In this document: one piece after another, positions 5,833-53,634 of the stretch | Layout of the letters: every line of letters starts with the position of its first letter | How positions within the stretch are numbered: position 1 is the stretch's first letter | From: Trichoplax adhaerens | Taxonomy: Eukaryota > Animalia > Placozoa | Length of the DNA stretch: 64,000 nt | Assembly: GCF_000150275.1 (NCBI RefSeq) | Contig: NW_002060967.1 | Location: 124,001 to 188,000, forward strand | Direction: 5' to 3' | Notes under the pieces: generated by a model | The model's database searches: none | What the model saw: only the letters and a program-made list of their open reading frames with translations | What the model was told of the DNA's origin: nothing | Program-made: the position numbers and the translations under genes

Positions 5833-8800
5833 ATGCGTCAAAGTATTCTTTACTGTGTGATTAGCGTTTGCCTAGTGACATTGTATCCAGCACCTTTCCA
5901 AGCGCAAAATTCACTCATACTATCATGCGAATTGAACTGGAAACAAAGTCTACGTAAATCGTTGTGTGCTCGATCCTGCTTAGGGGTAAGAAGGAAATAC
6001 AGTACAAAACATGAATAGAATCATTTATTTTGCACCAGGACACACCTGTAGTTGATGGTTATGTCAATGGACTTGAAAATGATTTTCATGAGCCATCATA
6101 AACGAGTTGCCATCATCAATTCGACTTGGCAAAGGAGAATCTAGTCCGATAGCTTCGATAATCCGAGTATACTGTATTAGTCGATACGATGACATAGAGT
6201 AAACCAAAAAAAATCTTCACCTTGACATAACCAATTGACCATCCTCGACTACTACTGTAAACCGGTTACGATGGCACCTTGTACCGCAAAGATAAATTAG
6301 CGGTGAACGTTATAAAAACACAAAAAAACAAAATGCACTAATAAATGCTTCAAAAAAATCAAAATACCCGTCATAAAATCAATCTTTCATCAATAATGGC
6401 CCGTACAATATACAGTACTTGTACGTGTTGGCTTTCTATGCCTAAGGATAGAAACAAAAAATGCAGTGCAACCAGTTTTTGTACCACCCATCATTTTGTT
6501 TACCTTGATAAATTATTGCAAAATGAGAACATATTCATTGGGAATCATATTTAAACAGGCGTTTCAGTTACGCCATATGTTATTAATTGAATGGATGATC
6601 ATTTATTGATTACATCCTATCTTGCTTCAGGATGTTGTTCTCAATGACTTCTAAATTACCAATTTCCGTATCTGACGTCCTGATCATTTTATATCATCAT
6701 TGACATTGATTGAATCAACAAATCGGCCACCATAGAATTGAAAATGAGATCCAGGATCAAATATTTTCTTATCATTTCATTGACATGAGCATACAGTAAT
6801 AACTGTACTCACTTTTCCTCTACTGTTTACTTCATATTTTATTGATGCAGAATCATTAATGTAGACGAACAACATTGAACGGATCACTCGGATAATGAAT
6901 TCTAATATATCATTTCCATCTTTCTTTCTTTTTTTTTGCCCGTTTCCATTCTCGACTGATAGCAGTTCTAGTCACGTCACAAGGTAGCAAAGTTACTTAT
7001 TAAGAACGAGCGCAATGCAGTAACAGTAATTAATTAAAAAAGCAGAAATAAAAACATTCACTTGGACGATGGTGTTGACCACCATCGGTCGGTGGCGAAA
7101 TGATCGGATCAAATGATCTTCCGTTCTTCATCCTTTGAACTTTATTTCAGCTGATTACACTAATCGATCATTTTTTATAGCATAATAATTCTATCAATAC
7201 AGCGACTGCATTGGTGTCAAAAACCAGCTTTATAACAATGATAACGGAAGACAAATCTCTAAATTATTATAGTCTCCGGGATTGAGTGTCCCTTAACTAT
7301 CTCACAAGAATTGAGACGCCTTTGCTTCTACGTTAAACAACTATAGAACTCCTCTTTTATTCCACTATTGGCCGAGCTTAAATACCCTCTGGCAGCTACT
7401 ATCATGTATGAATCATAACAGTTCGTGAAATTTAGTTCACTTTGGATAGCTAAACTAGTGCAGAAATTATTCATAATCTTAGACATAGAGTATACTAAAT
7501 GATTGTAGATAATTAGATTACAGTATGTCCAATTATTAGGCCCAGCCATAATAACTCCGATTACTCAGATACTCAGCGTAAATAGCTTAAACGATGATAT
7601 ATTATTCTAGGAGCACAGAATTATTTATAGTATCATCTATAATTGAATATCTTCAAGATATTCATTACAGGCGTTACAAGACATATCACCATAATCAATT
7701 AACATTACTTACTGTATAAGAACTCTTACTAAGGTACACCATAATTGACTGTAACAAAATAAATAACTAACCTAGTTCTTACTGTATGTCCATTATTAGT
7801 TATCCCCATCTAGAAATGTTAACCACTAAATTTAGTCATTTACTCTTCACGGTGGTTCGTACCGTGACAATTGGCAACCACCATCCTTAGTTCAAACTAT
7901 TTCCCCCTATTCTAATCCATTTCAATGTGTTTATCATCTACTGTACTGTATTTCCAGTGGATTACCATCGTAGTAATGATGTGCAGTTATTGTACAATAA
8001 ACAAATGAAATACGATCAAGATTATCAACAGAGTTGTGTCCATTTACCTCATTTTTATATTGACTGTACAGTGTGTGAGAATGGATTCATTTCTTCTCCA
8101 GGAAATCATATTTCATATTACTGTACCTACCAAATTCTCTATAAATCATCTATTTGCTACCATTTCCTGTATTCAAAATAGACTAAAGCCGAGATCATGC
8201 AGTCTTCTGGGGGGGAGGGTACCGGTATTAATAAGGAAAAAAGCGATCATAATTAATAAATCAATTTGGTACAACATCATCAAAACTACTCGTAAACTGC
8301 AAAGGATAAATGACACTATACATACAGTATGTGAAAACACGTAGCTTTTGATGTCTATATCTGTAACCTAATAATTGCACTCGATACATAGCTCACGAAA
8401 TTGATCAATCGATTCATTAGTTTAATGTTCTAACTGCTCCATACTATCTTTCATTTTTTTACATGTAAGCGTACTCATTGTTTTTCTCGCGCTAACTTGA
8501 TAACTCTTGCCCTAGATGAACACAATCAATGAAAGACTTACATGTTGCAATCCTAATAAATGCAACGATCCTTGTATTTATGGTTGCTTAACAGCATGCT
8601 TGGAACCTTGGACTAAAAGTTACAATTGCTTGGAAACCTGTACTAATAAATACGCTGGTAGGCTAGAAGAATACTCATGTTGGAATGCCTGCTACTTGAT
8701 GAAAAAAATCCATCAACAATCCTACTGTAAGCCCTTACTTTGTACCAGTAATTTTATCTTGATAATTTTAAGGCTTTCACTTATCAGTAAGTTATCATAT

Positions 8801-11800
8801 CTGAAAGATTCAGTTACAACCAATTTAATGGACCTTACAGTGCAAGAATTGCGTCAATTCATTGTTACTATTACCACGCAGAAAATAAAGTCAGTCAAAA
8901 GATCGGTTTCATTATAATTAACTAGCAGTACTGTAGAACAGTTGTATTATTTACAGCTTGTTTACAGTGAATAAGCCTATAATTAATAAAGTCTTGCTAC
9001 ATAAATTTAGTATTATTCAAAGAGTTTACTTAATATTGATCAATTGTGCTACATGGATATGATTGATATATCGTAAATGATATATTTCGCCGTTAAGGCT
9101 ATGTATTTTAAATAATAATAATAATAGAAAGTATTAAAAGAATTTGTAATTTTCCAATAATATAGCATTTGAAGATTGTAAAATATATTTTCTGCCTCAA
9201 ATTATAAACAACGGTAAGGAGTAGAGTTATTTCATTTTCTTATACTTAACAACGACTGGATATTCTAACAATGTTTCACATTCTGCCTTGATGCAGTAGA
9301 ATAGCATCAAGCTAGAGTAAATAATAATCGACTACATAATCTTGCGATATTGTATACTCTCACTATAGCCTCAATATTACAAAAGATACGTGGACCCATT
9401 AACTGCTTACCTTTTACTGGACCAAAGAAATATCATGTGTCTACGTTGAGAAATTCCACTACAGACAGCACCCCCGTTATTTCTCAAGATGGATACCGGA
9501 ATGAACGTTGTACTTGCTCACCACCTGAGCTACATAATGCTAGTATCAGTAACTACCTCGTTACGCCAACTTTTAAAAAAATTACAGTCAACAGCAATGG
9601 TAATTTTGTAATAGAAATTCGGTGGTTACGTGCATTAGGTTCGTATTACACTATACCATGAAGGGCTAATTTTACCTTCTGAATCTTATTCGATTGAGAG
9701 AATGTTACTATTAGCAATTGCTTGAAGTTTAAAGATCAAACTATACCGTACAATACCAAAATGACCAAATTTTAACGTCTTTCAGTTTATTAAATTTTCG
9801 CTCGCCGCTTTCCTTTATGTAGGCTATCATAATGACTTTGAGGTACAGTTTATTGTGCCGATTAGGAATCCACCCAACGGTACCCGCCGGAAATGCAACA
9901 TCACAACAGAAACGAACATCAAAATTGTAATAGATCGCATTGCCAATTTATCCCACGCAGACGTACATGAAAAAGGCATTGACTTTATTATCCTTCGAAT
10001 TCCTAATCCGAGCAATTTTTATCATTCGCAAACCATTGGAAACAAGGTGACTATGGCTGCTGAAGTCAAGAAAAAATATTACCAAAAGTACAGGGAATAT
10101 TTCCCCAGCGATACCGGTTAGTCATAAACACCCTCAAAACCAATTAATACAGTAAATTATAAAGCGAATAGAGTCGTCTGAATATAATCGTTAGTTTTCA
10201 ATAGAATCTATTGCTAGATCATGGCTCACACATTATCAACACTGCAGTAGTTTTTTATGCCAAATTCAAAAACTTTAGATAAATAATATCTGTTAATAGT
10301 TCGTTGCAACTCAATTCGCTAACTATAAATCACTACAACATGAAAGTACCATTCTAATTAAAGTCCTATCTAATAATGCACTATACCATTGCTAGAACCA
10401 ATAATGTAACGATTAATTCTAAGGGTATAATAAATACTGCTCTGCTCATACTAAGTTTGAAAATTTAACGATTAAACATCTTATTTTTTATGCAGCTAAA
10501 ATACCTCCAGAGGCGGTTGCATTGATTTGCTTGGCTAGTGCAATAGCTTTAATTGGCACTTCCGTTTACTTATACTTGGCATACCATCTCAAGTGTAAGC
10601 TGTATTTTTAAATCATCATTTTTTATAGTATTAAAATTTTTTTAATTATACCAACCAGAGTGTACCGTTAGCTAACTGGAAGCATTTTCACTACAAGCGT
10701 TATCTTAAAAGTACAGTAGTTAAATGCAGATATTCGAAAAACTGATGCTGTCTAATAAAAAGATATTATCTATGCGTTAATTCTTATAGCAAAATTGAAT
10801 ATAGCGAATGGTATCACTGAAGAATTTTATCGGGATAGACTAACAGAATTGGATAGAGCTCTTAATCCGGGTTTGGGATAGATAGCTTTAATATTATTAT
10901 CCTGAAAAATAACACGTTTAGGCAATATACAGTACAATCGTATGTCATCTATACTTATACGTATGACTATCTAAATAAAATGATCACTTCTTTTATTCTT
11001 TATGGACAGTGTATCCTGTAGCTGAACGCACCATTAGCAGTCCCGACTATGTTAGCATAGTACATGATCTATTCGAAGAAAATATCGATTTAAATCTATT
11101 AAGATTTCTAGATGGTAACAGGATTGGTTACAATGTTGTTGGAGCAATTGATGACGATATAGCGACTCCAATCCCAGAAATAGTTATGAGGAAACTTACA
11201 ACATGTTCAAAGGTACTGTAGAATACTTATTGCTACTATTATGGCTGTTCTTATAGTAATAAATCACTAGTTTACAACATATTGGGAATGATCTCGAAAA
11301 TATTCCCTAATAATTATGTAGTGTAATGAAGCTGAATAACAGTTTACAAGTATTCGTATTCAACCATGTAACTACATTTTTATACTTATTCGGTTACGTC
11401 ACAACTTTCATTACGAATGAGTGCTATCATAGGTATAACGACAACTGTGGTTAATGGATTGTCTTTTTTAATTTTTGATTACAGATAATACTCTATCTAT
11501 CACCGGAATACATTCGAAATATCAATAAATACCAAAAACGTGATCTGCGAGACTTCGAAAACGATAGTCCTGAACTAATGTTTGCCAAATGTACATGGTC
11601 ATTAATGCTACGTAAACTTTATAATTGTCCTCGCAGTAATGATGTAATTGTGGTCACGAACACTTCGATATATCCTGGTTCATGGATAAGGTTTGCAAGA
11701 TATCATCTTGCCTTTCCTTCTACACAAATCCGTGATCTTAAGTACGATAATCACTATGATCCTCTACTACGCTGCCTACGAACAGCAAGGGCCGATTTAG

Positions 11801-11808
11801 AAACTTGA
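5833..11808 (+). CDS. Receptor 1: type I membrane protein, signal peptide + anosmin-like Cys box + FN3-like + TM + TIR/SEFIR-like domain (~544 aa, 8 exons)
   Basis: Exons 5833-5985, 8516-8726, 9369-9638, 9823-10116, 10496-10594 (TM: AVALICLASAIALIGTSVYLYLAY), 10790-10870, 11010-11212, 11485-11808. All introns are GT-AG with compatible phases (0,1,1,1,1,1,0), total 1635 nt open. Cytoplasmic motifs CSKIILYLSPEY and IRDLKY. Confidence 0.85.
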
Positions 11809-17800: not shown

Positions 17801-18957
17801 CTGAATCAATCATTTTTCAAATTTATAGAATTCTCGGCTCAATAAACTTGACCTAAGACAGACACGTATACAATATATGTATACGTTATTGCTGATTGAT
17901 TCTAGACATTAAGTTTAACATGCATTCATATTCGTTGCTTTGTTACAATAAAGGGAACTGCAAATTTATTGCTATAGGCATCGATAGTTGATTTAAATAA
18001 GAGATGATGCGCCATTAAAACAATATGGAGCAGAAATCTCTATGAATATTTGGGATAATTACCGAGTGGGTAGCAACTTGTTTAAAAGCTGAGAAACTCT
18101 TTAACAAATAAAACCAGTCCGAAGATTGAACTCTGCGGATATTTTTGCGATTTTTCAATGTCTCAGCAATCATTGATGACATAGTGCTACATTATTCCAT
18201 TAATTGATTGCCCATACAACAACTATTTAGACTTGATACCACCACTTTCTGAATAGAATTATCATCTTGTAGAGGCAATTATCGCTAGCGCGAGTAAAAA
18301 AAAAAGCCCAAAATATGGCGGCACTGAAGAATTGGTTGGTTGAAGAGAAAGTTTGAACTTGTGAGATCGTTTGTGTCGTCTGACCGTACAAGTCAACTGA
18401 GAGCCATTCTATTATCAGCCATTGAACCATTGTCAGCGCAGTCAGCCATTGTATGAGTATGTAATGAAATTTGTTACGCTCGTTCGTTGAAGCGTCATTC
18501 ATGACTGTCTTTCAATCAGTCCATTGACGCAGATATCAGCAGTGTAAACGTCTTCAGTATCGAGTTTTACTATTAGTATTTTTTGTTCTTCCAATGTTGG
18601 TATCAGAATGAGGTGACACTTGAGATGAAGCTAGTTGGCTATTATCTCTTTCATCAAATGCATTGATGTCCACTTGAGCACGAACGACTACCCAAGATTT
18701 TATTGTCTTTCCCACTTGGACTGTACAGTATGTAATCAATGATAACGGTACGGTACCGTATTGTACACTGTAGTCACCCTCTTATATTAACGATTGACCG
18801 TCGATTCCATTCTTATTCTTAGCCATCACTGCTGTAAGTACTGTTTCCTTGGCCTTTTTAGTCGTTCCACCATTTGAACTTCTGCTCCATACTCAGTGAA
18901 AAAAACGCCACAGTCAATTGGATTCAAGTGGCATAGAAAAGATTGTATTCCTTTTTC

Positions 18958-21900
18958 ATGATGGATCAAATTTTGATTTTAATCCTGGTACTAATCTGCT
19001 TATTAAATTGCGTATTAACGAGCAACGCTTTGAAAGAAAATTGGAATATTGCTCAAAGCGATTGGAAAAATCAGGTCAAAATTTCTCTTTGCTCCTCGTC
19101 GTGCTATGGGGTAAATATGGCTATCAAAGCAACTTTTCATTGAACTTGAGAGTGATTCATACAATTTTTTTCCTTTTGCATTATGTTGGGAGGGCAACCT
19201 CTGTAACACACTAGCGATATCATACTTTCATGCAATGCTGTATGTACAAAGTGGACACATTGGACCATCACTAGTAAAGCGACATCATAATAAACGTAGT
19301 TTACACTACCCAAGAACTTTTTTTTTAAAACAACCTTCAACAACAATCATAAAATGGTGTGACTGTAATGTAGATTTATCGATAGGGAGTATGATCATAC
19401 AAACCTTGATTGGCTATGGTATACTGTAACAAAGGGGAAGGAGAAAAATAGCAAAAAGAAAGTTCCTCTAGTCTTCAGATAAAGAAAGTACAATATCTCT
19501 CAGTCTTGTAATTTTACATCATGCCTTAATTCCGAGATTGAACTGCATTTTGCAGTCTTGCGGCGAAAGAAAGTACAGTAACACTTATTAGTCGAGCTAT
19601 TTCGATCGGGCATTGGTCATAGGTTGAACTGTGTACAGTTACACTGTAGTACGAGTGGACGTCAAGAGTATTCAATAAACTGTCTCTATATTTTACTAAC
19701 TATTTTCATCAAGTCTAATGACTAGTTTGGTATCACAAAGCCCATCATAAACAATCATTCCTAATAAAGGATGAAACGCCCATCAATTTTTTCCACATTT
19801 CAATATCCAGTCCACAAGGAAATATTAATTAATAAACTACAATCTAGAAATACTGAGAATATCGTCGTATTTATAGCCTGATACTTCGACTACTTAATGA
19901 AGTTATTAGCACCCAGTTCATGATATCCAATGAAGTATTACTAAGAAATCATAATGAATGGAATAATCCATGCTCCAAATTATAGGCATTATTCTGTAGT
20001 AATAACGGTAACACCATAATTGCAAGTGTAGAAATTTTAACTAAAGTAAAATAATTAGTAATACTATAATGGTTGTAGGATTGCGGTAGTGTGTCTAGCA
20101 CGTTTGTAAAATATCTAATTATAATTATCATTCTATGTGATTCTATACGCTTCATCGTATGCCATAAAAAACTGTGGAATCCAATTCCACAAAATTGAAC
20201 CAACTTTCTCCTCAAATTACGATCAGTAGATTGTCGTCTTCAAAATAGAGTAACGTTCATTTGATCTACAATGCTTTCTTCCATAACTGTCCAACATTTA
20301 TGGCAGTATTACAATTTAATCAGTCAAATGTACATGATCCGATATTTTCTGACACTTAATATATCACCTTCTATCATGCCCTAGGCAGTTTTTTTGCAAT
20401 TCCCGTGTACTCAGTTAGCCACTGAGTAGATAAAGAAAGAGAATACTCTAACTACCTACCAACGTTATACAGCGACACCAATATTTTAATTAAATACACG
20501 AGTATATTCCAATAACTCGCCATAGCTATATTAAATTCTCCTATCTCTGTCGGACTGTCACTATACAAAACCTATGGTATATAAATGCTATCGCAATCAA
20601 TAAAGTTAATTATTTATTCACTTCATTTATATCAATAATATTGTGCGATTAGGGTAATCTACTAGCCTCCAGCTATATGCTATAAATAATCTACACTACA
20701 AATACAGAAGTAAGACCTGTGTAAATTGGATTTTCATTCTCAATTTTTATTACCTATTGTACTGTACATTTACTTAGACTTGAGTTTTACGCTGTTATAT
20801 ACTGTAAGTCGTGTTTCCATTATTTGCAATCAAAGTAATAACTACGAGGATATTATTGAATTGATTTTAAAAATTAGCCTGTACACCGAGATGCAATATA
20901 CTGTAGTACTTTACCCAAATGAACAGTAAAAATGTCTAATTACCATGGATAATCAATTGATGATGATTGATAAATTGTCCTATGATACCAACATTCTGCT
21001 TATCAAAAAATTCGTCGCTGTACAGTACTATACTGTACAAAAATTAATTTTTTCGAGATTTTCCTATTTTTAATTATCTATAAACCAATACTGTAACATA
21101 TACAATCTTATGATAGAATATTGCTTATATTTTTTACTCGCCTACTAATGTCATTAATCTGATTGCTAACATAGATGAATTTTATGACATTACCCAGTAT
21201 TTGTCTGGCTGATGGTCATGACCAAGCTTGTATTGCTCCATGCTTGAGGCCATGTATTGTGCCTTGGCAGTCGTTAAAGCATTGCGAAAATCATGTCTGC
21301 GCTGGATACCGAGGCTCACTCGAATTAGCGACACTATGCTTTAAAGCTTGCAGAGTGATGGAAAGTGTAACACAGTTCCCTTTATCTCGTAAGTCGTGAC
21401 TGAGTATCGGAAAAATCGATTAAATTTGATGCAATAAGTATATCCAGCATCTCTAGCGTAAATCGATTATTTTAGCTTTCATATTCTTTTTTTGGCTGTT
21501 TAATAATAAAACCTCAAATAATTTGAAAAATGAAAAAAACAAAGACTTGACTCTAGCTATAACTAGCCAAACTAGCTTCACAGTACACACACTGATACCG
21601 AACGTAATTGATAATGACTATGACCTTTAGTAGATTAATAGAAATACTGTAATGTTGAGGTATGTACGTTAGAGATCAAATTCAATATATGCAGTGGTTT
21701 TAGTTCTGTATTGAAATATAGTACACATATATTATACGGCCATCTTCGATCTAACCAACTAACGTATAGCTAAATCAATTGCAATCTGATTATCATATGT
21801 TAGCATTTACTATCAAATACACCTAGAATAATTTCTTACCGCTAACACCATCACAGTGTTTGGCTTGCCTCCATATCCTTTCAATCTTACATTTAACCAG

Positions 21901-24775
21901 TACAGTATTGCTAAATCCTATAAGTACATCATGTGATATCTTTTGTAGCCTAAAATTTTAATTAATCTTATAAATAAAATGCGATACTGTTTCTAGAAGT
22001 TAATTTCACGCATATCAACAATACACTTTTGTCGATCTTCAACCATTACTCCTACTCTAAAAATAATTACTATTAGAAAGTTTTTCTAGTTAACGAACTA
22101 TCATAGTAAAGCAAATTTAAAATGTCAATTTAATAACCAATGGATAATAATTAATAAATGAAATGAAATGTTATCGAATGTTACTTACGATGATCCATAG
22201 TCAATTATCCGAGAATACTATTAATTCCATAATTAATAAATATTCCTTAATAATTATCGCGGTTTTTGATTCACATGTAACCGAAAATAATCGATCAATA
22301 ACGGTCATTATACTTGCATTTTTGATCAGGTAACGATAGTCAAAAATATATATTGCCCAAGGTTGTAAATAATGGTAAGCAAGAAACTAACTAATTTAAT
22401 ATATCTTGTGTACATTAAAATAACTTAAAGTACACTTGTAAGCGCTTTATATCTAATATTTAACGGCACTGTAGTTAAGAATTCAACTTCTATCTAACGA
22501 CAACGTAGGAATAAAGATATTAAAGGCTATTCTTGTATATATAATCTATAGAAACTCTGATAAACTGGATATTAGCTCCTGTAAATTGCAAGCCTTTTAA
22601 GGGGCAAAGAAAATACATCGTACCGCCTTTAAGAAATTTTACTGCTGGTGGCCATCCGATTGTGATCGACAGCGAATATAAGGACGAAGTCTGTTCTTGT
22701 CCCTTAGAGAGTTGGAATGATAAGATGCATAGTATGAGTTACTATAAAATCAAGTCAGCCACAAAAGAAATTATCTATAATAAGCAAAATAATACATTCG
22801 TCGTCAATATTACCTGGAAACCTCCAGAAGGTTTATTTCAATAATCTAATTAAATAAATCGATCAGTACGACCATTTTTAAGACTTGTTTTCATTTCGAA
22901 TAATACCAGTAGCATTAAACTATCACATTCTAGAAGCCAGTACTGTCATTACAAAGTCATGTAGGATACACAAATTAAATAATGTACTAAATTAATTCTT
23001 TCGGTCAATTAATTAAATTAATAGGTATATTTCTCTTTAATAAATTATCTTTTAGACTATTTTGGGAATTTCGAGATAAAATTTACTTTGGATGTACTTG
23101 TGGATATTGCAAATCCTAAAAATACTAGCCGTACAATATGCTACGTGACGGATAAAACCGAGATTAGTTTCGTCTTGGACCATATCGCAAATTTATCTTA
23201 TGCTGCAACAATTGACAAAAACTATATACCTTTTAAAATTCTTAAAATTCCAAATACTGCCGGATCCTTTGTCATGGAGAATATAATAATGAACAATTTG
23301 GTTATGGAAAAGTTTAAAGAAAAATATATCCCTAAAACTTATAGCAGTAAGCTACCAATACTAGCTAGCTACTTGCGCAGCAGATACATAAAATTTGTCG
23401 AATATCTATCATAGTAGTGCATAATCATTTAAGACATTGTATAGAATTACTAATTGAGTGAAATACGTACATGAGCAAAGAAGTAAATAATTACAATGAT
23501 TGACTGCACCACTATGCCGCAATCATCAGATTTTTATACAAGGATCAACTTGACTTAATTTATCATGTATTTGTTGTAATTTGTTAAAAAATTCCAATAT
23601 TTAAAAGAAATCTTTTTTAACATTTTAGACCTTCCAATATGGACGTGGGGATTAATTTTCGCAATTATATTATCAACTGCGGTTATTGTTCTAAAAATTC
23701 TCAAGCATAAGTATCGCCAGAGAGGTATGTCAGTAAATAGCTGGACATGCAACCTTAAATTTTTTGTAAATGAACCTATAATCATTAAGTAACGGCAAAC
23801 GTAATACTTAGTATTACTTATTCCATTTTCAGCTCAATATAGGGCAGCTATGAAGTTCCTAGAATCACGCTACCCAACACACACTTGCACCGAAATTCTT
23901 GAAAGACTACGTACTCGTATGTTAAAAGAATAATTTATCATATAACTAATATAGGACAATTAAAATAATTTAAATCTCCAATAAATGCCGGTAAACTATA
24001 ATTTCTCATTCATTTTTATTGTTTTAACAGCACATCCTGTGACTGATGAAGACATGATCTGCAAAAAATATTATGCTTTTATAATATATCAATTATCTGA
24101 GCATGAAGTCAATGAACAGTTATTGCAACTGCTCAATGAAAATAATATTGGTTATACAACTACTGCAGAACTTTATAATGCAATAACTATTCCATTGCAT
24201 GAAATGGTTATGAATCAATTCTCGACTTGTAGAAAGGTGTGATGTTATGTAATGACTGTGTTCACTTAAACAACACATAAATCTGGGTCTTGACAAAATA
24301 GTATTACTTTACTTTAAATGTAAGCAAAATAGCAGCAATTAATATTTTAAAGGAAATAAGCGCAACCATCTGTAAGTAATTAATACATCGTTATGTTGAT
24401 TTAAATAATGAACTCACCTACTTTTTGCAGGTAATCCTTTACGTAACGCCGGACTTTGTTCAAATAATAAGTAAACATCTCGAAAATCTAAATTCCGATG
24501 ACGGTGATAATGATGATTCGCAAACGAAGTTCGCTAAGTGCACTTGGTCATTCTTATTACTTAAACGTTATGAACGCCCTGTAGGCAACGACATCATCTT
24601 AGTTACTGACAGTAGACAGTACGAAGGTAAATTAATAACCCGAGCGAGCCAGCTACTCTGCTTACCTTTGGTACCAATATACGATCTGCGATACGAGGCC
24701 CAGTGTATGCAACTGGTAGAAAATCTAAAAACGACAGTAACTGAAGAGACAAGAAATCCTCAAAATCGGGTTTAG
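18958..24775 (+). CDS. Receptor 2: paralog of receptor 1 (~555 aa, 8 exons)
   Basis: Exons 18958-19110 (MMDQILILILVLICLLNCVLTS...SLCSSSCYG), 21175-21388, 22552-22830 (VNITWKPP, FN3-like), 23056-23346, 23629-23724 (TM: IWTWGLIFAIILSTAVIVL then KILKHK), 23833-23916, 24031-24236 (YYAFIIY, TIR box1-like), 24431-24775 (VILYVTPDFV). Same phases as receptor 1, 1668 nt open. Confidence 0.87.
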
Positions 24776-26420: not shown

Positions 26421-26439
26421 TACCAAATGTTAATTCCTT

Positions 26440-32350: not shown

Positions 32351-32433
32351 ACAGTGGCCCTCAACCACCAGCCTTTTATGTCTCGTCACAAACTTCTGGT
32401 GCATATAAAGCAAAACTTTCCTTCTAAAGTTAG

Positions 32434-32730: not shown

Positions 32731-32784
32731 TAAGCCATCTCATAGGAAAACATCCTATTTTTTCATAACTACGATTTATTACAA

Positions 32785-37400: not shown

Positions 37401-40400
37401 GACTTAAATATAGAGTCATTATCTGTTAAATTACGTTGAAAAAAATGGCCAACAACGTTAACATAGTTAGTATTTGCTCTATAAACAGTTCTATAGTTGC
37501 TCAACTACGAAATACGTGTTATGATTATTTACTGCTAGATAGTGGTCGCTAAGCATCTTAGCTTATTTTTAACCTCGAGTTTCAGAAGCCATTTAATATA
37601 AGGATGCTAAATAGGAATAGTTTATCGATTCTGGCAGAATCCCTAGTAGCATGCGAGAACAATGTCTTCATAAATTCATATTCATTATTGCGCTATTTGA
37701 CGAAATCTAACTAACGATATTTTTGATATCTTTTCCGTTGGACTAGATAACCAGAGTTTTGTTGATCCTCTATTTGCAAATCCTCGTAAGTGTCGTAATT
37801 TAAAGTAGATTTATATGGTAATCAAACCGTGTTGATAGAACAAGTTCTCAGAAAAGATTAATCTTTGTTGAATTAATCTGTAATAGGTTATTAACTATTT
37901 CATAGACTTAGTAAACCATTTTATAATATAGAAATGAGTATCTTTCTTCACAATTTACTGTACAATCAATATCTTAATGATAGTGTTTTTAATCGAGAAA
38001 AGAATATCTCTTATTAAAGTATAGCCTATTCTGCGTGCTTGTTTTGTGCTCTGCATAAATATCTTCCATCATTGTTGGTAGTTACGGCTGTTCAAGTTGA
38101 AATAATATCCTAAATTAGAGGCAAAAACGTTGCAAAACGATAACAAGCACCTACGTTAAAACAGTATTTCTATTAAGACGATTAGTTGATAACTCGATAT
38201 GCAAAGAAGTAATACTCGATCAATATTCAAGAGAAATTTGTAGCTATCCAATAATGTTAATTCTTCGCCTTACCATATTTTATAATTATCCAGAGACTAA
38301 TAAGTCTTTTCTATACCGATCATGATACAACCATAGTTATCAATTAATGCGATTACATTTTTTGATCTATAGACTGGAATACTGAGGAAAATCTACTGAG
38401 TTCCCTATGCAATAGCAACAATGCAGGTATCTTGAATTAGCTAAAGTAGACTAAATATCATTGGTTCTAGTATGGCTCTTAGAATATTGCCGTATTACAT
38501 ATGTGTGTTATAGTATATTTAATGACAGAATTATATCAAACATTCTCAGATAGCTCTGCTAACGTAAATAGTTCGCTATGTATAATAAAATAAGAGTAAA
38601 TAGAAAAGGGTTCGTACATGAGTAAAATGTTTGCTTTTTAAAAACTATTTCTCGTGTCGAATTCTATAAAATTAAGAATAAGTATGGTCGTGAAGTCTGT
38701 GTCATTTCGATCATTCAAATTTCCACCATACTAGGTGCAATGAAATATATTGTCAAAAATTTGGTGATTGGAAATGAACCGTTTCGGACAAAATCAAACA
38801 ACGAAATTTGCACCTGCTCCGCCAAAAATTCATTGACATTACCTCCCAATGTTGGCCAGTATGTCGTTCCCCCTTTAAAGTCTTCAGTTGACTATAAAAG
38901 TGGCCACCTCGTCTTACAAGTAAAATTTAAACCTAAAGGTAAATTCATTTATGAATTGCTATTCCCTTCATAACTTTCGCTCTCTAGTAGCCTACTTCTG
39001 TTTATTCCACTACAACGCTGGCTACATCGTAATCAAGTCATTATTTGGGTCGTAATGAGGCATTCATTTTTCCTTCAATTTCTGCCATGTTTAACCTTTT
39101 GATTGTATCCTATCCTACTTAAATTCAAATTTATCTATTATTTTCTCATTGCTACTGCTACTCCTTTATCTCAGTACATATATTTGTTTTGTAATTTTAC
39201 TCTATTATAGGGGAATGGCAGGAATTACGTTACTTTCTCAAAAACCTGAATGATGATTCAGGAGCTGTGGTCAGCTACTGTAACATAACCAAAAGTAATG
39301 TGGCAACCGCCATCTTGCACCAACCTAAAGATCAAATTCGTTACAACATTCAGCAAAATAATAATGGCATCGAATTTATGGTCCTCGTGGTGCCTAGTAT
39401 TCCTAATCTAGATACTACCTTATCCTTAGCGAAGCTTACTCCAGCAGCACTAGAATATTTAAACCCCACTACTGCAACTGCACCTACTGGTAAGTGTTTA
39501 TGATTATTCTAGACTGAGATAGGTTTAGCTATTCTATCACTACAAATAGGATCGATTATATTATAAGATATTCTATCTCTTTTAATATTTATTTTCCATA
39601 CAGGGAACGTATCGGAATCCGATTATGCCACATCTGGAAGTAAATATTATAATCTAAATGATGTATAGAGCAATAAATTGCTATACTGTAGATTCTATAT
39701 TTCATCTATCATTTCGACGTCAAATTTTTCCTTAAATGTGGAAAAATCGATAAAGACTTCAATTTTCTATCATTGCACGTAGTTCTTCATATCGAGCTAG
39801 GATAACGCAATCATTAATTGACGATAAAGAAATTGTGAAACGAAATCTTCTTAGGCTTTAAAAATCAATGTTGCATATTGATGAATTCGTATTGCTAATT
39901 TTAAGTCTATTCGTTACTCAAAATATCTTGATTGCAGTAACTTCATGTCAATAACAATCCTAGTATAACCAGCGAGTTATCCTACACCATCGGGCATTAT
40001 GCCATACAGAATACCTTCTTCTGCATTTAATTGCCAAACTCTTACAGTGCTCATAAGGTTATTATAAATAAGCCACAATATCTTTCACTAACATTAAACT
40101 AATTGTCAGATCATGAGGAAAAAAACGACTATTGGAAATGGCTACTTGGGTCGGGATTATGTGGTACATTAATTGCAGTTTCTCTTATAGCGATTTACTG
40201 GAATTTTCGAAGTAAGTTTTGTGAAATCATTAACATTATTTTAAAAGTCAAGTCTCTCGGTACAAATTACGTTAAATTACGTCCAGTTTCTTGGTAAAAA
40301 CGCAAATTTTATATCTAGTAAAACAATGTTTTCTTAAAGCAACACTCCTCAGTCATCATAGCTATTCTCTACTTGGTTTATTGTAACGTTTGTGTTAATG

Positions 40401-41584
40401 TTTGGTCAATTTTATCATTAGCTAAGCTGCTTACAGGAGAAATCGCAGGAAGAAAATTATTTCAGGACAGAACTGGAAGATGTTTTGAAGAAACATTTAA
40501 CGAATTATTCAGTGGTATGGAATAGTTCCTGAAACTACGTAGAGTAACATTGGCCCTACGTACAGCGATAGACTAAGAACTTAAAAGATACTATAATATC
40601 TATACTTGAGAGATATCTTCATGTTACCACCATCTTACAGCTATAAATACTATTGCCTAATGGTAATATCTGTATTGCGAATAGCGATGAAATAAATAAT
40701 AGAGGACCTTAATTTTTATGTTATTTATAGTGGAACGTATACAAGGCATATCTGAACTTAAAGAAAACAAGAACTTCTTATTAATTATTCAGTGTCTGGA
40801 TGAACAATTTTCCTTAATATCAAAGGCCTTAGAAAAATTCCTAAAAAAAAAAGAAATGAAGTATACCGTTTCAGATGAAGTCGATGAAGGCCAACTTCCT
40901 ATAGCTTATTCTATGGTTAAACAAACCGCTGAAGCTGGAAAGGCACGTTTCCATAGCTCTAATCCACCAGTTCTGTATTAATCAGAATATGATAATAACA
41001 GTTCGCAATAATGATCAAAATGCTTATTTTGTTTTATGATGTTTATATTTTCCTACTAATATTAACTTGATTTGGCGAAAAGAATAATTAACTTATACTG
41101 AAACGTTCTAAAAATCTTGAATCAACCAGCATATTTTACTGTTCTATGTTCATTTATTTAGCTATAATTTAATTAGAGACGGATCAAATGTGTTCATCAG
41201 GTATAAATCGAAATTCACTCTGATTATTTTCGTTGATAATAGATTATCATATTCCTCACAAAGAAATTAGTGGAAACGGTCGAAGAATACAGGGAAAATA
41301 GTAGAATCAATTATGATAATGACGATGAGAAAGCTATGATCATCTTCTTTTGGATTACTGTCTTGGAAAGATTAAGAAAACATAAAAATAGTATTGATAT
41401 TATCCTTATCAAAGATAGTAAACTAGATAGTAGTATTATGGTGCAGAATGGAAATAAAATTCTTGGCTTAGATGATCTCCCAATCTATGATATTCAAAGC
41501 AAGAAGGACCAAAACCAAATTCTAAATTGTCTCACACATACGACTCGAGGAGATAAAAATTGGAAAATTTCAAGTGCTGTTTAA
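34415..41584 (+). CDS. Receptor 3: family member of the second subfamily (~562 aa, 11 exons)
   Basis: Exons 34415-34537 (MANFSRSYITIFFLFTCIGFSLG...MCYHRCIAK), 37133-37337 (CLSSCEFV), 37747-37785, 38373-38426, 38735-38938, 39211-39489, 39604-39639, 40110-40211 (TM), 40422-40514, 40731-40942 (GC donor), 41243-41584. 1689 nt open with compatible phases. Confidence 0.83.
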
Positions 41585-42311
41585 GGCTATAATTTCTTTG
41601 GATTTCGATCTTTCTTGAATTGCTATAGTACTGAAATTTACTTTAAACACCCACGATTTAAAATGTTGTAAGGTGTGATATTCTTGGAAAATGATATAAG
41701 ATATATTCCAATAAGAGATCGTTTGCTAATCCATGTAAGCGATTCTTAAGCTTCAGTAGTCGAAATTCGACAGTTTTAGCATTGTTGGTCCAGCCAATGT
41801 AAATATAGAATTACTGTAAGCTTTAGTAGTATTTATAAAGAGAAATATCACGATTAATTGCATCGCTTTTATTGCAATTAAACGGTAACAAATCTACTCC
41901 TTGTGTACAAATATTGTAATGCATTATGGCATAATTGAGTGTAAACTGGTTGATTAGCCAATATATCTGTAATATTTTTGCATGAAAATTTATTTTTCTA
42001 CTCTAATGTTAAATTTTATTACCACCTAATACTTTATTACTAACTCACAACTGTCAAATTGATAATAAAACTAGCCATATTCTCTAAATAAACTAACTTC
42101 TGATCTCCACATTTCTGATAATTGGAGATCAAAATGAATAAGACCTTAAATTTTAACCGGCTTGATTGAATTCCGAACTAGCAAAATATTAATCTCAAAC
42201 ATTTGATATCTAAATTATTATCTACGTGCATTATATCGAAGAATTTGAAAATAATAACTTCACTACTAAACACTAAAGAATTCGATTATTTGAAAATTGA
42301 AATAAAAAGTT

Positions 42312-43736
42312 ATAGGGATTGACTGGCAATTTCGAAGTTTTGTGGAATCGTTACCTTGATTTTCAATCTCGTGTCTCTCAGTACAAATTACCGTACTTAA
42401 GATTACATCTATTTTCTTGGTAAGAAATGAAGAGTTTTGATTTAGTAAAACAACATTTTCTAAAGCTACACTCGTCAGTCATCATGGCTAGTCTCTACAT
42501 GGGTTATTCTAAAGTTTGCGCTAATATTTCACTAATTTTGTCAATGGATAAAGTGCCTAAAGGAGAAAATAAAGGAAAATTATTTCGGGAAAGAATCGGA
42601 AGCTGTGTCACAAGAATATCATCAAAATGAATAAATCCTAGGTACAGAACAAATCCTAAAGACCACGTAGCGTAGCATTAGCCTTATATTTAATGATAGT
42701 CTAAGAAGTTAATAAATACTATAATTTCTATACTTAAAAGACATCTTCATGTTACTACCATCTTATAGTTATAGATACTACTGACTTGTGATAATATCTG
42801 TAATACGAATAGTGATGAAAAAGATAATAGAGAACCTTATTTTTACGTTCTACACCGGGCATATCTCACTTAAAAAAATGCAAAGATTTTTTACTCATCG
42901 TCTAATATCCGTGAATACACCTTCCCTTAAGGTCAGCGGGATTAGTAAATCTTCGAAAAAACAAAGGTATAAAGCATATCGTTCCCGATGAAATTGATAA
43001 AAACCAAGTTACTGTGTTTATGGACGTAAATACACAATCCAATAAATTTCCAAAGGTCAGTTTTTGTAACTCTAATCCACCAATTCTACTTTAAGCAGAA
43101 TATGATAATAACAATTTGCAATTGTGATTAACGCGTTAATTCGTTTTTGATATGTATATTATGCTATAAATGCACCTGATTTAACAACCGAAATACATTA
43201 TTAACTAATAGTAGAACGTTCTAAAAATCCTTCATCTATCCGTATATTTGCCTTTCTATATCACTTATATTAGCTATAATTTAAAGAAAGGTCAATTATG
43301 TTCATCAGTCATGAATCGAAATTAATTTTTGTTATTTTCGTTGTTGATAGATTATCATTCTCCTCGTACCAGAATTAGTGGAAACTATCGCTGACTACAG
43401 AAGAAAAGGTCCACTCATTGATGATAATCGTGACAAGAGCAAGGATATCGTCATTTTCTGTTAAAAATTGCCTTGCGAAAGTTTATAGAACATCCAAATA
43501 ATATTGACGTTACCCATGCCAAAGATAGTGAACTAGGCAATAGTCCTAGAAAGCAGAATGAAGATGAAATTCTTGGCTTAAAATATCTCTTAATCTATGA
43601 CATTCTAGACAATGAGGACCAAAACCGAATTTTAACTGATCTCACTCATATAACTTTTCATAGGAATCGAAGTCCGAGAATTCTGTCTACTTTTGAAGGC
43701 GTAATTCCTTTAATTTTGATCACTGTTATATTGTAA
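42312..43736 (+). pseudogene. 5'-truncated receptor pseudogene (end of TM exon plus three cytoplasmic exons)
   Basis: Starts inside a TM exon remnant (gggattgactggcaatttcgaag) with the donor deleted. The next acceptors are mutated and the exon near 42850-42995 is disrupted. The last exon from 43351 has TAA at 43462-43464 where receptors 3/4 have the conserved Trp (FFW). Confidence 0.85.
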
Positions 43737-46484: not shown

Positions 46485-49400
46485 ATGACCAAGTTTCTTT
46501 GCAGTTATTTTGCCATCTATTTCCTCTTCACTTGGATTGGATTCACCGTTACAATCACTCCAGATGCTGTCTGGAGATCATTGTGTTTACATCGATGTCA
46601 AGATAAGGTAAAGTAAAAATTTCTTTTACATACGGTAGCCACACATTTTTTTTTTTTGGAGCTTTTCTATTCTTAATTGCTGACGTATAAAATGAACAGC
46701 CGAATAGTAGCCAAACAACTTGATCGATATCACTCTAATATCGCTGTAAGGAACTGGAGTAAAAAGTATAGAAAGCAATTATTACAGTATTGCTGGATAA
46801 ATACTCTAACAGCAATCATTTCGGATATACTTAAAGATGTACATTGTTTTTTTCCATTGAATTAGTTACTTCTTACGATAGAAAGTGATCCATCATTTTT
46901 TTAAGCTTTTTCCGCTACTTTTACAAAATTGAACTTGAAAAAGTTTCATTCCGTTTCTTATTTATTTCTATATCATGCATGATTACTAGAACTATGGTTT
47001 GGATGTTTCTGAATAAACGCGTAATTTATCAATTTATTTTATACCGTATGACTAATTCAATCTTGCAATTTCTGTACGTCCGTTAAAGCTAGTTATGTCA
47101 GCTAGCATGACCCATTTCGTGGCCATCGATTTTATTGATTCATTTTACATGCCGTAAGGAATTCAATCCTACGGCTTTAATGATTGCAATTAAACCACTT
47201 CTAATAGCCTATTGGCCAACTATCACTTGATTGCTAAATCCATGTTGTACATAGAACAGATTAATCTTACGATTTCTTGATTGCCTTATTAGTTAAGCTA
47301 GTATGTCCCTTGTATAAATTCTTTTTACACAAGCGTCGTTTTTCTAAATTCATTCTATTTAAACAAATTCAATCTTGTAATCGATTAATTACCATTTAGA
47401 TTAGTTTTGTCCCCTTGCATCGCCTATTTTGCACTACCGTAGCTTTGATTGATTTTCCTAATACTATCAAAATATCCTTGCCGGCTATCTACGTTAACAT
47501 ATATACTGATGGACTGGCCATGAATAGATGCGCTTAGTAAGAAGCGGCCTTTTAGGAATTACCGTAAATGACAATTTACTACAAGTTAGAGTTTTCAGTT
47601 ACCCACAACCTTATGATAACATTCAACTAATCCGCAATTGGACGGATATCCGGTTGTACTTGTTAAGTGTATATCTAACTATGTCGTTTTTGCGATGTCT
47701 AATCAGATAGGCACATCCAAAGATAAAATATTATATACTATTTTAAGCTTGCTGTATTCGATAGACTTGACGGATCATTTAAAAGTATTTGACTCCTGCT
47801 AAAAAGCTATTCCATCACTCAGCAATGGTAGTAAAATATCTTTTGATAACACTTTGTTTATTTTTATCAATTATGGTGAGAAAAGTAGCAATTTCATAGT
47901 CTTATCGTTATTATTATTGCATGAACGTAGTCTTCAAATAAAAATGAAGATAATCCCCAAAAAACAAATCATAGTTGATAGCTACCTGTTGCTTAGCGGG
48001 GAGCGAAAAATTTCTCGGGAATTATCAACCATTACTCATCTATTAAACTAATTAAGACGGCCCATTCATCTCTTTTGTCGACGTCCGCCATTAAAAAATG
48101 CTGTCGTCTTATAATCAGGTTTCATCTTCTCCGCTTTTAATGGCTTTAGAAAATTTTAGCTACTCATGAAGTAAAGAAGTACGATAAATTATAGTATAGA
48201 TAAAATGATTGTAAAATGGCTAAAACTTACATAACTTGATCCGACATGACCTCCTTTAAAAGTAGAACAACCCCATGGTAAAGAGCCCTTTCCTTTCCGA
48301 TCGATCTCGCTTTGTTTTTGGTAAAGAGTCTTTCCCTTTTCCGATCGATCGCCTTTTATGTCCTATTCGTTCACGAACAGTTGGAAAAAGGAAAAATACA
48401 TTCATTGAATAATACAGCACTTGGTGCCAGTGTTCCCATCGAGGAAATCCGCAATCATTCTTAATTTGAGGAGTAAATCTTATTAGTAGATTCACTAAGT
48501 GTTAAGGCCTATCCTGAAAATCAGCCCATCCCTAGTACATCATTAACATCGCCGCAAATAGTACTAAATTAACTGAATAATAATATGAATTAAATACTTT
48601 ATTGTGTATTAATGGCATAGGCAGCTTCAAGTGTAGTCAGGGCACTGTGATGGCTACCGATTGAAAGCCGAGAGTAAAATGAATCATTAACGAGAGACTC
48701 CATTTTGATACAGAAATAATATTTCAACTACTGTGGTATGGGGAACTTTGGGAAGGCTGTGACATATCAAAATTTACTACTTGTTATTTGCTACTGCGAC
48801 TCGCTACTTATTCTAGTACGGCGGTTCTCTCTTGACAGAGTATAAAGTAAAGATTCTTTATAAATATAAATATAATAGGCAAGGATACTTTAATGGACTA
48901 CTAAATAAAGACCTTCTTTTAGTAGGCCTTGGCTTAAACTAATCTGCTTCATGTTGCTAATCAGAGGATAGAATTCTTTCTCTTTCAATGACACAAAGTC
49001 CAATCGAATTGTGAGGCTATGTGTACTGTATAAGCAAAAGCAAAGAGATTTTCCAATAGCGATGTAACAAGATGTCACGCGATCATTTTTAGTGGGCTTA
49101 ACGTCGTCCATCTTGCTTCTATCGCCTATTTGGATCATTCTTGCTGATTATCGCAATCCATTCTTTATATACCTATAAAGTAAAATCCATAGACGATCCT
49201 GTATACGTCACAATTATTTATATTATACTACAACCTAGTAAAACCTGTATCCGATTTTATACAATTTTGTAAAGGTAATGAAAATTATTGCGATGACAAG
49301 CCAATCATAGTTTTTCTTGGTAGCAAGTTATCCGATTTTATACCATTTTATAATCGTGATAAAGATTGTTGCGATAACAAGCTAATTGTAGCATTTCTTT

Positions 49401-52400
49401 GTAGCAAATTATAAAGGATGCGAGACCTGGATGTATCAAGCCAATTACTCAGGAGTGTTTCAAGCCATGCTTTAGACCTTGCAACACATCATTCAATGGA
49501 GAAAACTATTGCAAAGGCCTTACTTGCCGAAAATTTGCCAACAATCAAAAAAAAATATGCCGTGAATCCTGCAGTTTTGCTGATAAAGTCATCTTTATGA
49601 ACTTACCATGTAAGTCAATCAATATTTGCTAGGATAAATGAACATAGACAGGGAAAAATCTTCTTCTTACTTTCATAACTTAAAATAGAACCGTTAATTC
49701 TTAGTAGAATCACTAGCTACTGTATTGAATAAGATCGAAAAGAAATGGACAACAATGTTAACATAAACAGTATTTACTCTGCACACAGTTCTATAGTTGT
49801 GCTTGCTTGCAGCTACGGAATGCGTATAAGGATAATTAATTTAGTGCTAGAAAGTGATCGCTAAGTATCTTAGCTAGTCTTAAACCTCAAGCTTCAGCAA
49901 CTATTTAATTAATGCAAGAATGCAGCATATTAATAGCTTATCGATTCTGGTATAATTTCCAAAAGCATATGAGAACAATATCTTCATAAAATCATGTTAA
50001 CTACTACCGTATGCTATTTAATAAAATCTAAGTGACGATATTTTTGATATCTTTTCCGTGGAATTAGATAATCAGAGTCTTGTTGATCCTCTATTTGAAC
50101 ATACTTGTAAGTATCGTATTTCAAAATAGATTTATTCTCTGATCAAACTGTGTTGATTCAGTATTCAGATATAATTAGTCTTCGTTAAATCAATCTATGA
50201 TAGGATATTAACCCATTTCATAGGCTTAGTAAACTATTTTATAATATAGAAATGAGAATCTTTCTTAACAACTTGCAATCGATATCTTAATGATAGTGTT
50301 CTGTAGTGTACACAAAACTACTGTAATTAGCTGAAATCACTACACGTTCTTAATTTAAAAGAAAGTATCTATTCTTAAAGTAGAGCCTATTCTGCAAGCT
50401 TGTTTTATGCTTTGCATAATTACCTTCCATCATAGCTAGTAGTTACGGCTACGGCTGTTCAATTTGAAATAATAACAAAAATTAGGGCACAAGCATTGTA
50501 AAACGATAGCTAACACCTACATTAAAATAGTATTCTATTAAGACAATCTGTTTATAATTTGATATGCAAAGAAGTAAGAAGTTGATCAACATTCAAAAGT
50601 AGTTTGTACTGAAGATATCCAATAACATCAATATTTCGCCTTTACATATTTTATAATTATCCTCGGACTAATAAAATCCTTTCTATACCGCTATGACACA
50701 ATGATACTTATTAATTAATGCTATCACATTTTTTGATCTATAGATTGGAATACTGAGGAAAATCTACAAAATTCCCTATGTAATGTCAACAATCCAGGTG
50801 CAATGAAATATATAGCCAGAAATTTGCTGATTGGAAATGAACCCTTCCGAACAAAATCAAACGACGAAATATGCACCTGTTCCATTAACAATCCGTTGTC
50901 CCTCAATATTAGCCATTATATCGTTTCACCTATAAAGTCTTCAGTCGATTATAAAGATGGCAAACTCGTCTTACAAGTGCAATTTCAAGCTAAAGGTTAA
51001 TTCATTTCTTAATTATAATCCTTTTCATAACTTTCGCTCTCCAGTAAACTACTTCTAGTTATTCCACAGCAATGCCAGTTACATCGTAATCCAGTCATTA
51101 TTTAGGTCGTAATAAAGCATTCACTTTTTGGTTCAATTTCTGCCATATTTTATTCTTTTGATCGTATCCTATCTTACTCAAAGTCAAATTTATCCTTTAT
51201 TTCCTTATTGCTACTTTGTCTTAACACATTTCTCTAATTTTTAATCTACAATAGAGAAATTTGTCTACTACGAATTGCGTTACTTCCTCAAGAAACTGAA
51301 TGATGACTCTGGAGCTGTAATTACATACTGTAATATAACTAAAAGTAATGTAGCAACCGCCATCTTGCACCAACCTAAAGATCAACTTCGTTATAACGTT
51401 GATCGAAATAATGATGGAATCAATTTTATCATCATCGTCGTACCTAGTGTTACTAATCTGATTGCCACCACATCCTTAGCGAAACTTACTCCAGCAGCAC
51501 TAGAGTATTTAAACCCTGTTGTCTCTACGATTTCGACTGGTAAGTATTTATGATTATTCTGGACTGAAATAGGTTTATCTATTCTACCACTATATATTAG
51601 ATGAATTATAGGATATTTTATATCTTTTAATAGTTGCTTTTCATACAGAAAATGTATCAGAATCCAATTATGTGACATCTGGTAAGTAAATACTATAATC
51701 TAAACGATATAGAGAGAAATAAATTTGCTATACTGTAGATTCCATATTTCATCGATCGTTTCTAAGTTGAGTTCTGGATGAAGGAAAAATCAACAGAGAT
51801 ATTAACTTTCTATCATTACATATAGTTCTTCATATCGAGCTAGGATAGTTTAATCATTAACTAACGATGATGAAATTGTGAAACGAAATCTTCTTAAACA
51901 TTAAAAATCAATGTTACTTGTTAATCAATTCATATTGCTAATTCTAATTATATTAGTAACTTTAAACAACCGAGTTATCCAGCACCATTGAGTGTTATAT
52001 CTTGCAGAATACCATCTATTGCATTTAATCGCCATTATTCTATATCAATACTTAGCTGTACGATAAAGCAATAGCTAGCAAGTAATCTACTCTACTAGAA
52101 ATTTATCTTCGTTCTCAACCTCCAGACTCTTGCAGTCTTATAGGCCAAAACGTCTTACACTAACATTGAATTTATTTTTAGATCGTACGGAAAAAGATGA
52201 TACCTGGAAATGGCTATCTGTATTAGGTATCTTATTAATTGCAGCTTCTATTTTTGGGATTTACTGGCATTTTCGAAGTAAGTTTTGTGAAATCGTCAAA
52301 ACTATTTTTAAATTTATACCTTTCAGTATGAATTACTTAAGATTACATCTAGTAAAACAATATTTTCTGAAAGCTGCACTCGTTATTCATCATAGCTATT

Positions 52401-53634
52401 CTATAAATGGACTACTTTAAAGTTCATGCTAATATTTGTCTAATCTTGTCATTAGCCAAACTGCTTACTGGAGAAAATAAAGCAAGAAAATTATTTCGCA
52501 AAAGAACCGGAAAACGTCTAGCTAAAACATTGGAGAAATTATTCCTCGGTAAAGAACAGATCCTGAAAACATCATAGCGTAGCATTAGCTCCATATGTAG
52601 TCATAGTCTAAGTTTTCAAAAGATACTATAATGCCTATCTATACTTGAAAGACATCTGCATGTTACCACTATCTTATTGCTATAGATACTACTGACTTAT
52701 AGTAATATACGTAATGCGGATAGCGATGAAAAAGATAATAGAGGACTTATTTTTTACGTTATTTATAGCGCATCCTATACGAGACATAAACCAATTAATA
52801 AAAAGGAAAAACTTTTTATTCATCGTTCAATATCCGTGGAAAAATCTTCCCTTAAGGTCAGCGGAATTAGCAAATCTTCTTGGTAAAAGTAATATAAGAT
52901 ATACCGTTCCCGACGAAATTGATGATAACGAATTTCCTACGCCTTTGAATATGGTTGAACAGCCCGGTAAATCACGAAAGGTCAGTTTTTATAACTCTAG
53001 TCCTTCAATATTCTATATTAAATAGAATATAATAGCAATTTGCAATAGCAATTTGCAATAGCGATTAACGCGTTGATTTGTTTCTGATGTGTATATTATG
53101 CTACTGATGTACTTAATTTAACGACTGGAATACTTGCCGTAGCTAATAGTAGAATGTTCTAAAAATTTGTCATCTATCGGCATATTCTGCCATCTACATC
53201 ACTTAAATTAGCTATAATTTGAAAAATAGGTCAAATATATTTATCAGCCCTGAATCGAAATTGAATTTACTTATTTTCATTGATGATAGATTATCATTTT
53301 CCTGACAACGGGATTAGTGGAAACGGTCGCCGACTACAGAAGAAATGGTATCCTGACTGATGCTGATTGTGATGAAGGCAAAGATATGGTTATCTTTTTT
53401 TGGATTGCTGTCTTGGAAGTATTAAGAAAACATCGAAATTCTATCGATATTATCCTTGTTAAAGATAGTAAACTGGATAATGGTCCTGCAGTGCAGAATG
53501 GAAATAAAATTCTTGGCTTAGATGAATTCTCAATCTACGATCTTCAAAATAGTGATGACCGATGTCAAATTCGTACCTGTCTCTTCTATACGATTCAAGG
53601 AGATCGAAATTCTCGAATTCCATCTACTGTTTAA
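46485..53634 (+). CDS. Receptor 4: close paralog of receptor 3 (~560 aa, 10 exons)
   Basis: Exons 46485-46607, 49405-49609, 50068-50106, 50744-50995, 51255-51539, 51649-51681, 52182-52277 (TM: WKWLSVLGILLIAASIFGIYWHF), 52456-52548, 52769-52980, 53290-53634. All GT-AG, 1683 nt open. Confidence 0.87.

Follow-up and report, generated by a model that had tools for sequence, protein, structure and literature searches.

The 64,000-nucleotide stretch of Trichoplax adhaerens DNA analyzed here (contig NW_002060967.1, positions 124,001 to 188,000; hereafter the window) carries four of six tandem paralogous receptor genes (A to D), all on the plus strand, with the remaining two (E and F) located on the same strand within 20 kb downstream. 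These genes constitute a real, largely unannotated and divergent family resembling the interleukin-17 receptors (IL-17Rs), found in a placozoan, and thus in one of the simplest animals. The favored reading, to which a probability of roughly 0.6 is assigned, is that all six encode placozoan type I receptors composed of a signal peptide, a Cys-rich module, an FN3-like region, a transmembrane (TM) segment and a SEFIR-type cytoplasmic domain, and that these receptors work in an IL-17R-like manner.

The window, at C1390:124001-188000, consists of AT-rich eukaryotic DNA (GC content 0.29-0.38), and a four-fold series of the same coding pieces is visible in its plus-strand stop-to-stop reading frames. 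Exactly six intact genes and one relic were recovered when a profile of the last exon was run against the whole 105-Mb assembly. All six genes map to the plus strand of contig C1390, between 124 and 208 kb, and form a cluster of 84 kb whose last member, gene F, lies 18 kb beyond the end of the window. Comparison of the coding pieces by tblastn revealed 33-40% identity between A and B and 60-74% between C and D, with values of 21-27% between the A/B and the C/D genes (E value about 1e-6 for the last exon). The relic, a decayed 3' portion of a C/D-type gene situated beside gene C, carries four in-frame stops (three TGA and one TAA) plus a frame change. An earlier note on this DNA, made from the sequence alone, had counted two decayed copies; a second one was found neither by tblastn, nor by five exon hidden Markov models (HMMs), nor by the whole-genome profile scan, and the count is therefore reduced to one.

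The same note had claimed that the four genes of the window share one exon/phase skeleton, and on this point reading frames, splice-site and phase analysis, tblastn and the mapping of public models agree (Table 1). Gene structures were read from the DNA and from public models, and the splice junctions are predicted, with phases 0,1,1,1,1,0 common to A-D. The first exon provides the ATG and a signal-like hydrophobic stretch; W..C-x3-C comes next, and then a GT donor in phase 0. The second is Cys-rich, with six invariant cysteines. Two beta-rich exons follow, the first of which (b1) contains an invariant C-x-C and, about 30 residues later, a hydrophobic strand-W, and the second (b2) an invariant Cys and an x-x-P strand/Pro element. 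In the TM exon the best 19-mer reaches 2.0-2.4 on the Kyte-Doolittle scale, with basic residues (K/R) after it. The cytoplasmic domain is divided over two exons (cy1 and cy2) at a phase-0 site, ..K / I-I-x-x-L, and the position of this split is the same in all six genes. From these gene structures the products of A-D are predicted to be single-pass type I receptors.

The public model for gene A is P0003 (TRIADDRAFT_61635 of Trichoplax adhaerens), which bears the annotation 'uncharacterised' and is not cited by any paper in the literature searched, and that for gene B is P0002. Both share the predicted junctions, but both are devoid of exon 1. Gene C is represented by P0001, a poor partial fragment. 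A 14-codon mini-exon (22332-22373), placed between the Cys exon and b1, occurs in the public model of gene B only and has no counterpart in the gene A model. The searches reported below were done exon by exon, or with the public models P0002, P0003 and P0004 as deposited.

A TIR/SEFIR-like cytoplasmic domain, as proposed in the earlier note, was borne out for genes A and B by AlphaFold2 modelling and structure search. Residues 300-462 of P0003 form an alternating beta-alpha domain with predicted local distance difference test (pLDDT) scores of 70-90, and residues 312-480 of P0002 fold as a SEFIR/TIR-type domain, pLDDT being 70-95 overall across the cytoplasmic ~165 residues of the two proteins. 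In both models a five-stranded parallel beta-sheet/alpha-helix fold is superposable on solved SEFIR domains. The 49-50 best PDB matches retrieved with the two domains are nearly all TIR or SEFIR structures, with SEFIR chains first, and the top Foldseek match for gene A is chain E of 9ot1, an IL-17RA/RB/ACT1 assembly (E value 3.7e-4).

Assignment to SEFIR rather than to TIR is argued from the paralogues E and F, which are linked to A-D by profiles and score as SEFIR. The cy1 exon of gene F reaches 23.3 bits against Pfam SEFIR (PF08357), at the gathering threshold of 23 bits, and the corresponding exon of an F orthologue in another placozoan-like contig (L007) has a precomputed PF08357 match. 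SEFIR is also the top Pfam match of gene E, at 13-17 bits and below the threshold. When the cy2 exons of A-D and of four relatives from other contigs were compared with those of E and F, hhalign returned an E value of 5.9e-7 and a probability of 92%. The cytoplasmic domain of A-D is thus most likely a divergent SEFIR-type member of the STIR superfamily.

A candidate partner for such a domain is encoded on contig C1414, where an adaptor gene combines a Death exon (E value 2.2e-8) with a SEFIR exon (C1414:6761542-6761997, 31.3 bits); besides the TM-linked domain of F, this is the only other Pfam SEFIR match in the genome. In the mechanism considered most likely, and most economical, an extracellular ligand would bring receptor chains together, their SEFIR domains would recruit the Death-domain-SEFIR adaptor (CIKS/Act1 type) by SEFIR-SEFIR contact, and the adaptor would in turn feed signalling of the death-domain/TRAF/NF-kB type.

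The predicted ectodomain is short (~290 residues). Its beta-rich region follows a recurrent pattern in which a conserved C-x-C precedes 'strand-W ... Y/F-E-x-x-F ... C ... x-x-P', and over the six paralogues the strand-W, the Cys and the x-x-P are conserved at places compatible with FN3 strands B, C'/E and F, so that an FN3-like ectodomain is plausible on the basis of its sequence. One exon order is common to all six genes. The b1 exons of A-D and of E/F are related (hhalign E value 5.9e-6, probability 85%), and the same comparison of the b2 exons was not significant. Profile searches of PDB sequences with b1 and b2 gave chance matches only. Language-model neighbours of residues 72-258 of gene A belong to FN3/cytokine-receptor clusters (0.79-0.83), an observation rated as a lead only.

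The last-exon profile was also run against 1.84 billion representative proteins. Ten real matches were obtained, each of them either a Trichoplax model or a fragment of one exon located on a short metagenome/Logan contig, and no family member was found outside placozoan-like sequences, in keeping with the earlier suggestion of a lineage-specific family. On the contigs bearing the matches the arrangement of the neighbouring exons is conserved, a 5.3-kb contig (L010) even containing a complete C/D-type gene, and relatives in other placozoan-like contigs are 35-65% identical. Homologous-protein searches with P0003, and with the alignment, retrieved P0003 alone.

Within the cluster, C and D group together as a pair specific to the lineage (support 97/95). 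Their introns can be aligned, at 63-79% identity, and their synonymous divergence (dS) is ~0.5 (~0.35-0.66 in the cytoplasmic exons). The pair is a young segmental duplicate. Within the b1 exon of gene C lies a dispersed-repeat insertion of ~302 bp that neither D, its young paralogue, nor the related gene of contig L010 contains. At least three further full-length copies of this repeat occur on other contigs, with 72-74% identity, and the copies, which start with TG.. and end with ..CA in the manner of a solo long terminal repeat (LTR), are each bordered by a 5-bp target-site duplication. Because the duplicated target in gene C reads ..CAGG and ..TAGG, the borders of the insert take the form CAG/GT ... 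TAG/GT, and GT-AG splicing at these points would exactly restore a D-like frame. The insert is a candidate for recent intron gain via transposon insertion, or else it may be disabling. A second irregularity of gene C concerns the cy1 donor (40940-40948), which reads AAG/GCACGT where A, B and D have AAG/GT; either the intron is of the GC-AG type or the donor has been lost. The model P0001 takes an upstream GT at this site, losing nine residues.

Reading frames are open in every exon of C and D. In a neutral simulation of the 1137 nt that follow the insertion, the probability of finding no stop was 0.03 at 5% divergence and less than 0.001 at 10%. Since neutrality would rarely leave such frames intact, the open frames throughout both genes argue for function. 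Taken with these frames and with the relic, the rapid turnover apparent from the C/D duplication, the repeat insertion and the 35-65% identical relatives points to birth-and-death evolution, which the earlier note had also anticipated.

Several results weigh against the IL-17R-like receptor reading. With respect to the cytoplasmic domain, neither Pfam SEFIR nor Pfam TIR matches A-D, whether exons or public full-length models are searched, and profile searches of PDB sequences with cy1, cy2 and full-length alignments gave no SEFIR or TIR, only chance matches. Similarly, hhalign found no significant relation between the cy1 halves of A-D and of E/F, or between the A/B profile and the SEFIR domain of the adaptor, and structural comparison by itself does not separate SEFIR from TIR, the Z scores differing by less than 1. 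With respect to the ectodomain, there is no match to fn3 (PF00041) or to the IL-17R ectodomain families of Pfam in the exons or public models of A-D, and both AlphaFold models (A and B), whose ectodomain alignments consisted essentially of the A and B sequences alone, have pLDDT below 50 there, with a few strands predicted in b1 at low confidence. Because the two models are unreliable in this part, the FN3 fold is putative. With respect to the ligand, Pfam IL-17 (PF06083) has no six-frame match in the genome, a weak test given that introns may split the domain, and no IL-17 was found in T. adhaerens by Huang 2015 (PMC4517768). Finally, the exons of C and D that encode the TM segment and the cytoplasmic domain (40103-41584 and 52182-53634) have evolved almost neutrally with respect to each other, with ratios of nonsynonymous to synonymous substitution (dN/dS) of 0.73-0.79. 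The earlier note had suggested a possible early IL-17R-like system. The SEFIR-type fold and the adaptor gene are in line with it, and the IL-17R ectodomain families IL17_R_N and IL17R_fnIII_D1 have no six-frame match in the genome.

The ecto exons of C and D, with dN/dS of 0.24-0.38, are far more constrained than the TM and cytoplasmic ones, suggesting that the signalling domain of this pair is under relaxed or diversifying selection. The pattern is the reverse of that expected from a ligand-driven arms race. It could also mean that certain receptors of the family, C and D in particular, act as decoys or inhibitors or are in decay, the ectodomain having been kept and signalling lost, and the exonic repeat insertion and GC donor of gene C, together with the 3' relic that adjoins it, fit such a fate. 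However, the cytoplasmic exons of both genes have all stayed open at a dS that would rarely permit this under neutrality, and the core motifs I-I-I-F-L-T, D-I-I-L-V and I-Y-D are kept in C, in D and in the relatives from contigs L010 and L013, so that loss of signalling is regarded as a rather unlikely explanation.

Alternatively, the domain could be functionally TIR, of the IL-1R/TLR type, and would then signal via the TIR-containing MyD88-like adaptors of Trichoplax instead of the Death-SEFIR adaptor. Yet the paralogues E and F, to which A-D are linked through the cy2 exon, give SEFIR and no TIR matches, and Pfam TIR (PF01582/PF13676) is without a match in the exons of A-D and of E/F alike. 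Furthermore, SEFIR chains not only rank first among the structures but also align over a greater length (146-151 residues vs 128-130 for TIR). A TIR function is, on this evidence, improbable, and the SEFIR-type assignment is retained.

The Cys-rich module that opens the predicted receptors is common to the family, as the Cys exons of A-D match those of E/F (hhalign E value 1.4e-3) and the E and F exons are the next-best matches of the A-D Cys profile among the reading-frame pieces of 104 kb. Three helices are predicted over this exon in both models, at pLDDT below 50, and the favored receptor model accordingly contains a putative N-terminal helical module built on C-x3-C pairs. Its spacing, C-x3-C ... 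C-x3-C-x9-C-x3-C-x12-C-x3-C, presumably resembles that of the anosmin Cys box, and an anosmin-type Cys box is what the earlier note had proposed. The module could not, however, be detected as a member of Pfam Cys_box (PF17869, gathering threshold 29 bits). The single faint match, in one of seven Cys exons (that of gene C), scored 11.8 bits (E value 0.26) over profile positions 42-81 of 82, and there was none in the other six, in the gene E model P0004, which includes the first C-x3-C, or in a six-frame scan of the genome. The WAP domain likewise has no match in any exon or model, the region after the Cys exon having only 3-4 cysteines. No anosmin was retrieved from PDB sequences with the A-D Cys profile, and no paper combining SEFIR with anosmin was encountered in the literature searched.

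Like the family, anosmin-1 (KAL1/ANOS1) has at its N-terminus a secreted module rich in cysteines, with paired C-x3-C, and FN3-like sequence further on, but it is a secreted matrix protein without TM segment or SEFIR domain, and its WAP domain is absent here. That the Cys module and FN3-like region are truly homologous to the anosmin-1 N-terminus, and the family one of matrix/heparan-sulfate-binding adhesion or guidance receptors, has in its favor the cysteine spacing and that one faint match and is very improbable in view of the silent Cys_box in the remaining exons and the whole genome, the missing WAP domain and the blank PDB search. It is equally doubtful that an anosmin-type ectodomain was joined to a SEFIR domain before the compared placozoan lineages diverged, which would make the module a very old relative of anosmin-1. 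If true, this would connect anosmin to receptors of the SEF/IL-17RD type, and it would suggest that matrix or heparan-sulfate-bound cues are sensed, and not an IL-17 cytokine.

Under the IL-17R-like reading, the comparison with known systems is as follows. As in IL-17Rs, the products are predicted type I single-pass proteins with a beta-rich ectodomain, one TM segment and a cytoplasmic SEFIR-type domain, their best structural matches are the SEFIR chains of IL-17RA/RB/ACT1, and a CIKS-type adaptor is encoded in the genome. Even the divergence that defeats domain models has a parallel, since degenerated FN3 domains occur in about half of IL-17Rs, some of the receptors having also gained EGF or Ig domains (Chen et al. 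2024, PMC11087794). In contrast to IL-17Rs, A-D have no Pfam signal for IL17_R_N, IL17R_fnIII_D1 or SEFIR, an IL-17 ligand is undetected, and the short ectodomain opens with a helical Cys-rich module that is not described for IL-17Rs in the literature searched. TIR receptors and adaptors (IL-1R family, Hydra TRR-2, the TIR of MyD88) differ in that neither an Ig/LRR ectodomain nor a Pfam TIR domain is present here.

Parts of this architecture were known before. From Trichoplax sp. H2, Kamm et al. 2019 (PMC6321704) described a single transmembrane protein with SEFIR and without detectable FN3, as well as a Death-SEFIR adaptor, an architecture that Chen et al. 2024 (PMC11087794) take as ancestral for CIKS. 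The latter authors place the first appearance of the IL-17 pathway in cnidarians and leave placozoans unmentioned. The transmembrane protein of Kamm et al. most probably corresponds to gene F, because F is the sole TM-linked Pfam SEFIR match in the genome. In place of that single receptor, a relic and six intact paralogues are found here, the latter clustered within 84 kb and four of them undetected by Pfam/InterPro. The additions made by the window are these four Pfam-invisible members, the common Cys-rich module and the pattern of turnover.

For Trichoplax, from which a single gene of this pathway had been reported, a small family thereby emerges, most members of which are missed by standard domain annotation. 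The co-occurrence of this cluster with a Death-SEFIR adaptor, and with no recognisable IL-17, bears on when receptor-SEFIR signalling arose and on which ligands these receptors bound before IL-17, or in place of it. The conserved Cys-rich module is a candidate new ligand-binding domain.

Table 1. Predicted genes, exons and related features of the receptor cluster within the window (positions counted from the first nucleotide of the window; exon limits of genes A-D are +/-3 nt).
Feature	Position	Strand	Exons or parts	Basis or remark
Gene A	5833-11808	+	5833-5985 signal + C-x3-C; 8516-8726 Cys-rich; 9369-9638 b1; 9823-10116 b2; 10496-10594 TM; 11010-11212 cy1; 11485-11808 cy2 + stop	frames, splice/phase analysis, mapping of P0003
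Gene B	18958-24775	+	18958-19110; 21175-21388; 22552-22830; 23056-23346; 23629-23724; 24031-24236; 24431-24775	frames, splice/phase analysis, mapping of P0002
Gene C	34415-41584	+	34415-34537; 37133-37337; b1 in two parts, 38372-38434 + 38737-38938; 39211-39489; ~40103-40211; 40731-40942 (donor AAG/GC); 41243-41584	frames, splice/phase analysis, tblastn
Dispersed-repeat insertion, ~302 bp	38435-38736	+		in gene C b1 exon
Decayed 3' relic, C/D-type	42332-43733	+	TM-like 42332-42391; cy1-like 42858-43046; cy2-like 43351-43691	beside gene C; tblastn, exon HMMs, genome profile
Gene D	46485-53634	+	46485-46607; 49405-49609; 50744-50995; 51255-51539; 52182-52277; 52769-52980 (donor AAG/GTCAGT); 53290-53634	frames, splice/phase analysis, tblastn

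Downstream of F, a further plus-strand gene (L003 5488-7457; C1390:213488-215457) encodes a TM segment and several beta-rich pieces; it lacks a SEFIR-like exon and gave no match to the exon profiles of the family at E values up to 5, nor any Pfam match. On the other side of the cluster, the upstream minus-strand neighbour is an Apaf-1 homologue, with a CARD exon at 763-1152 (minus strand, E value 4e-22) and with NB-ARC, APAF-1 winged-helix and APAF1_C exons situated within the 10 kb that precede the window (L005 7133-9202, minus strand). Upstream of gene A, at ~3030-4030 on the plus strand, lies a tandem DNA repeat with a unit of ~180 bp, whose overlapping frames repeat a pattern of ~60 residues.

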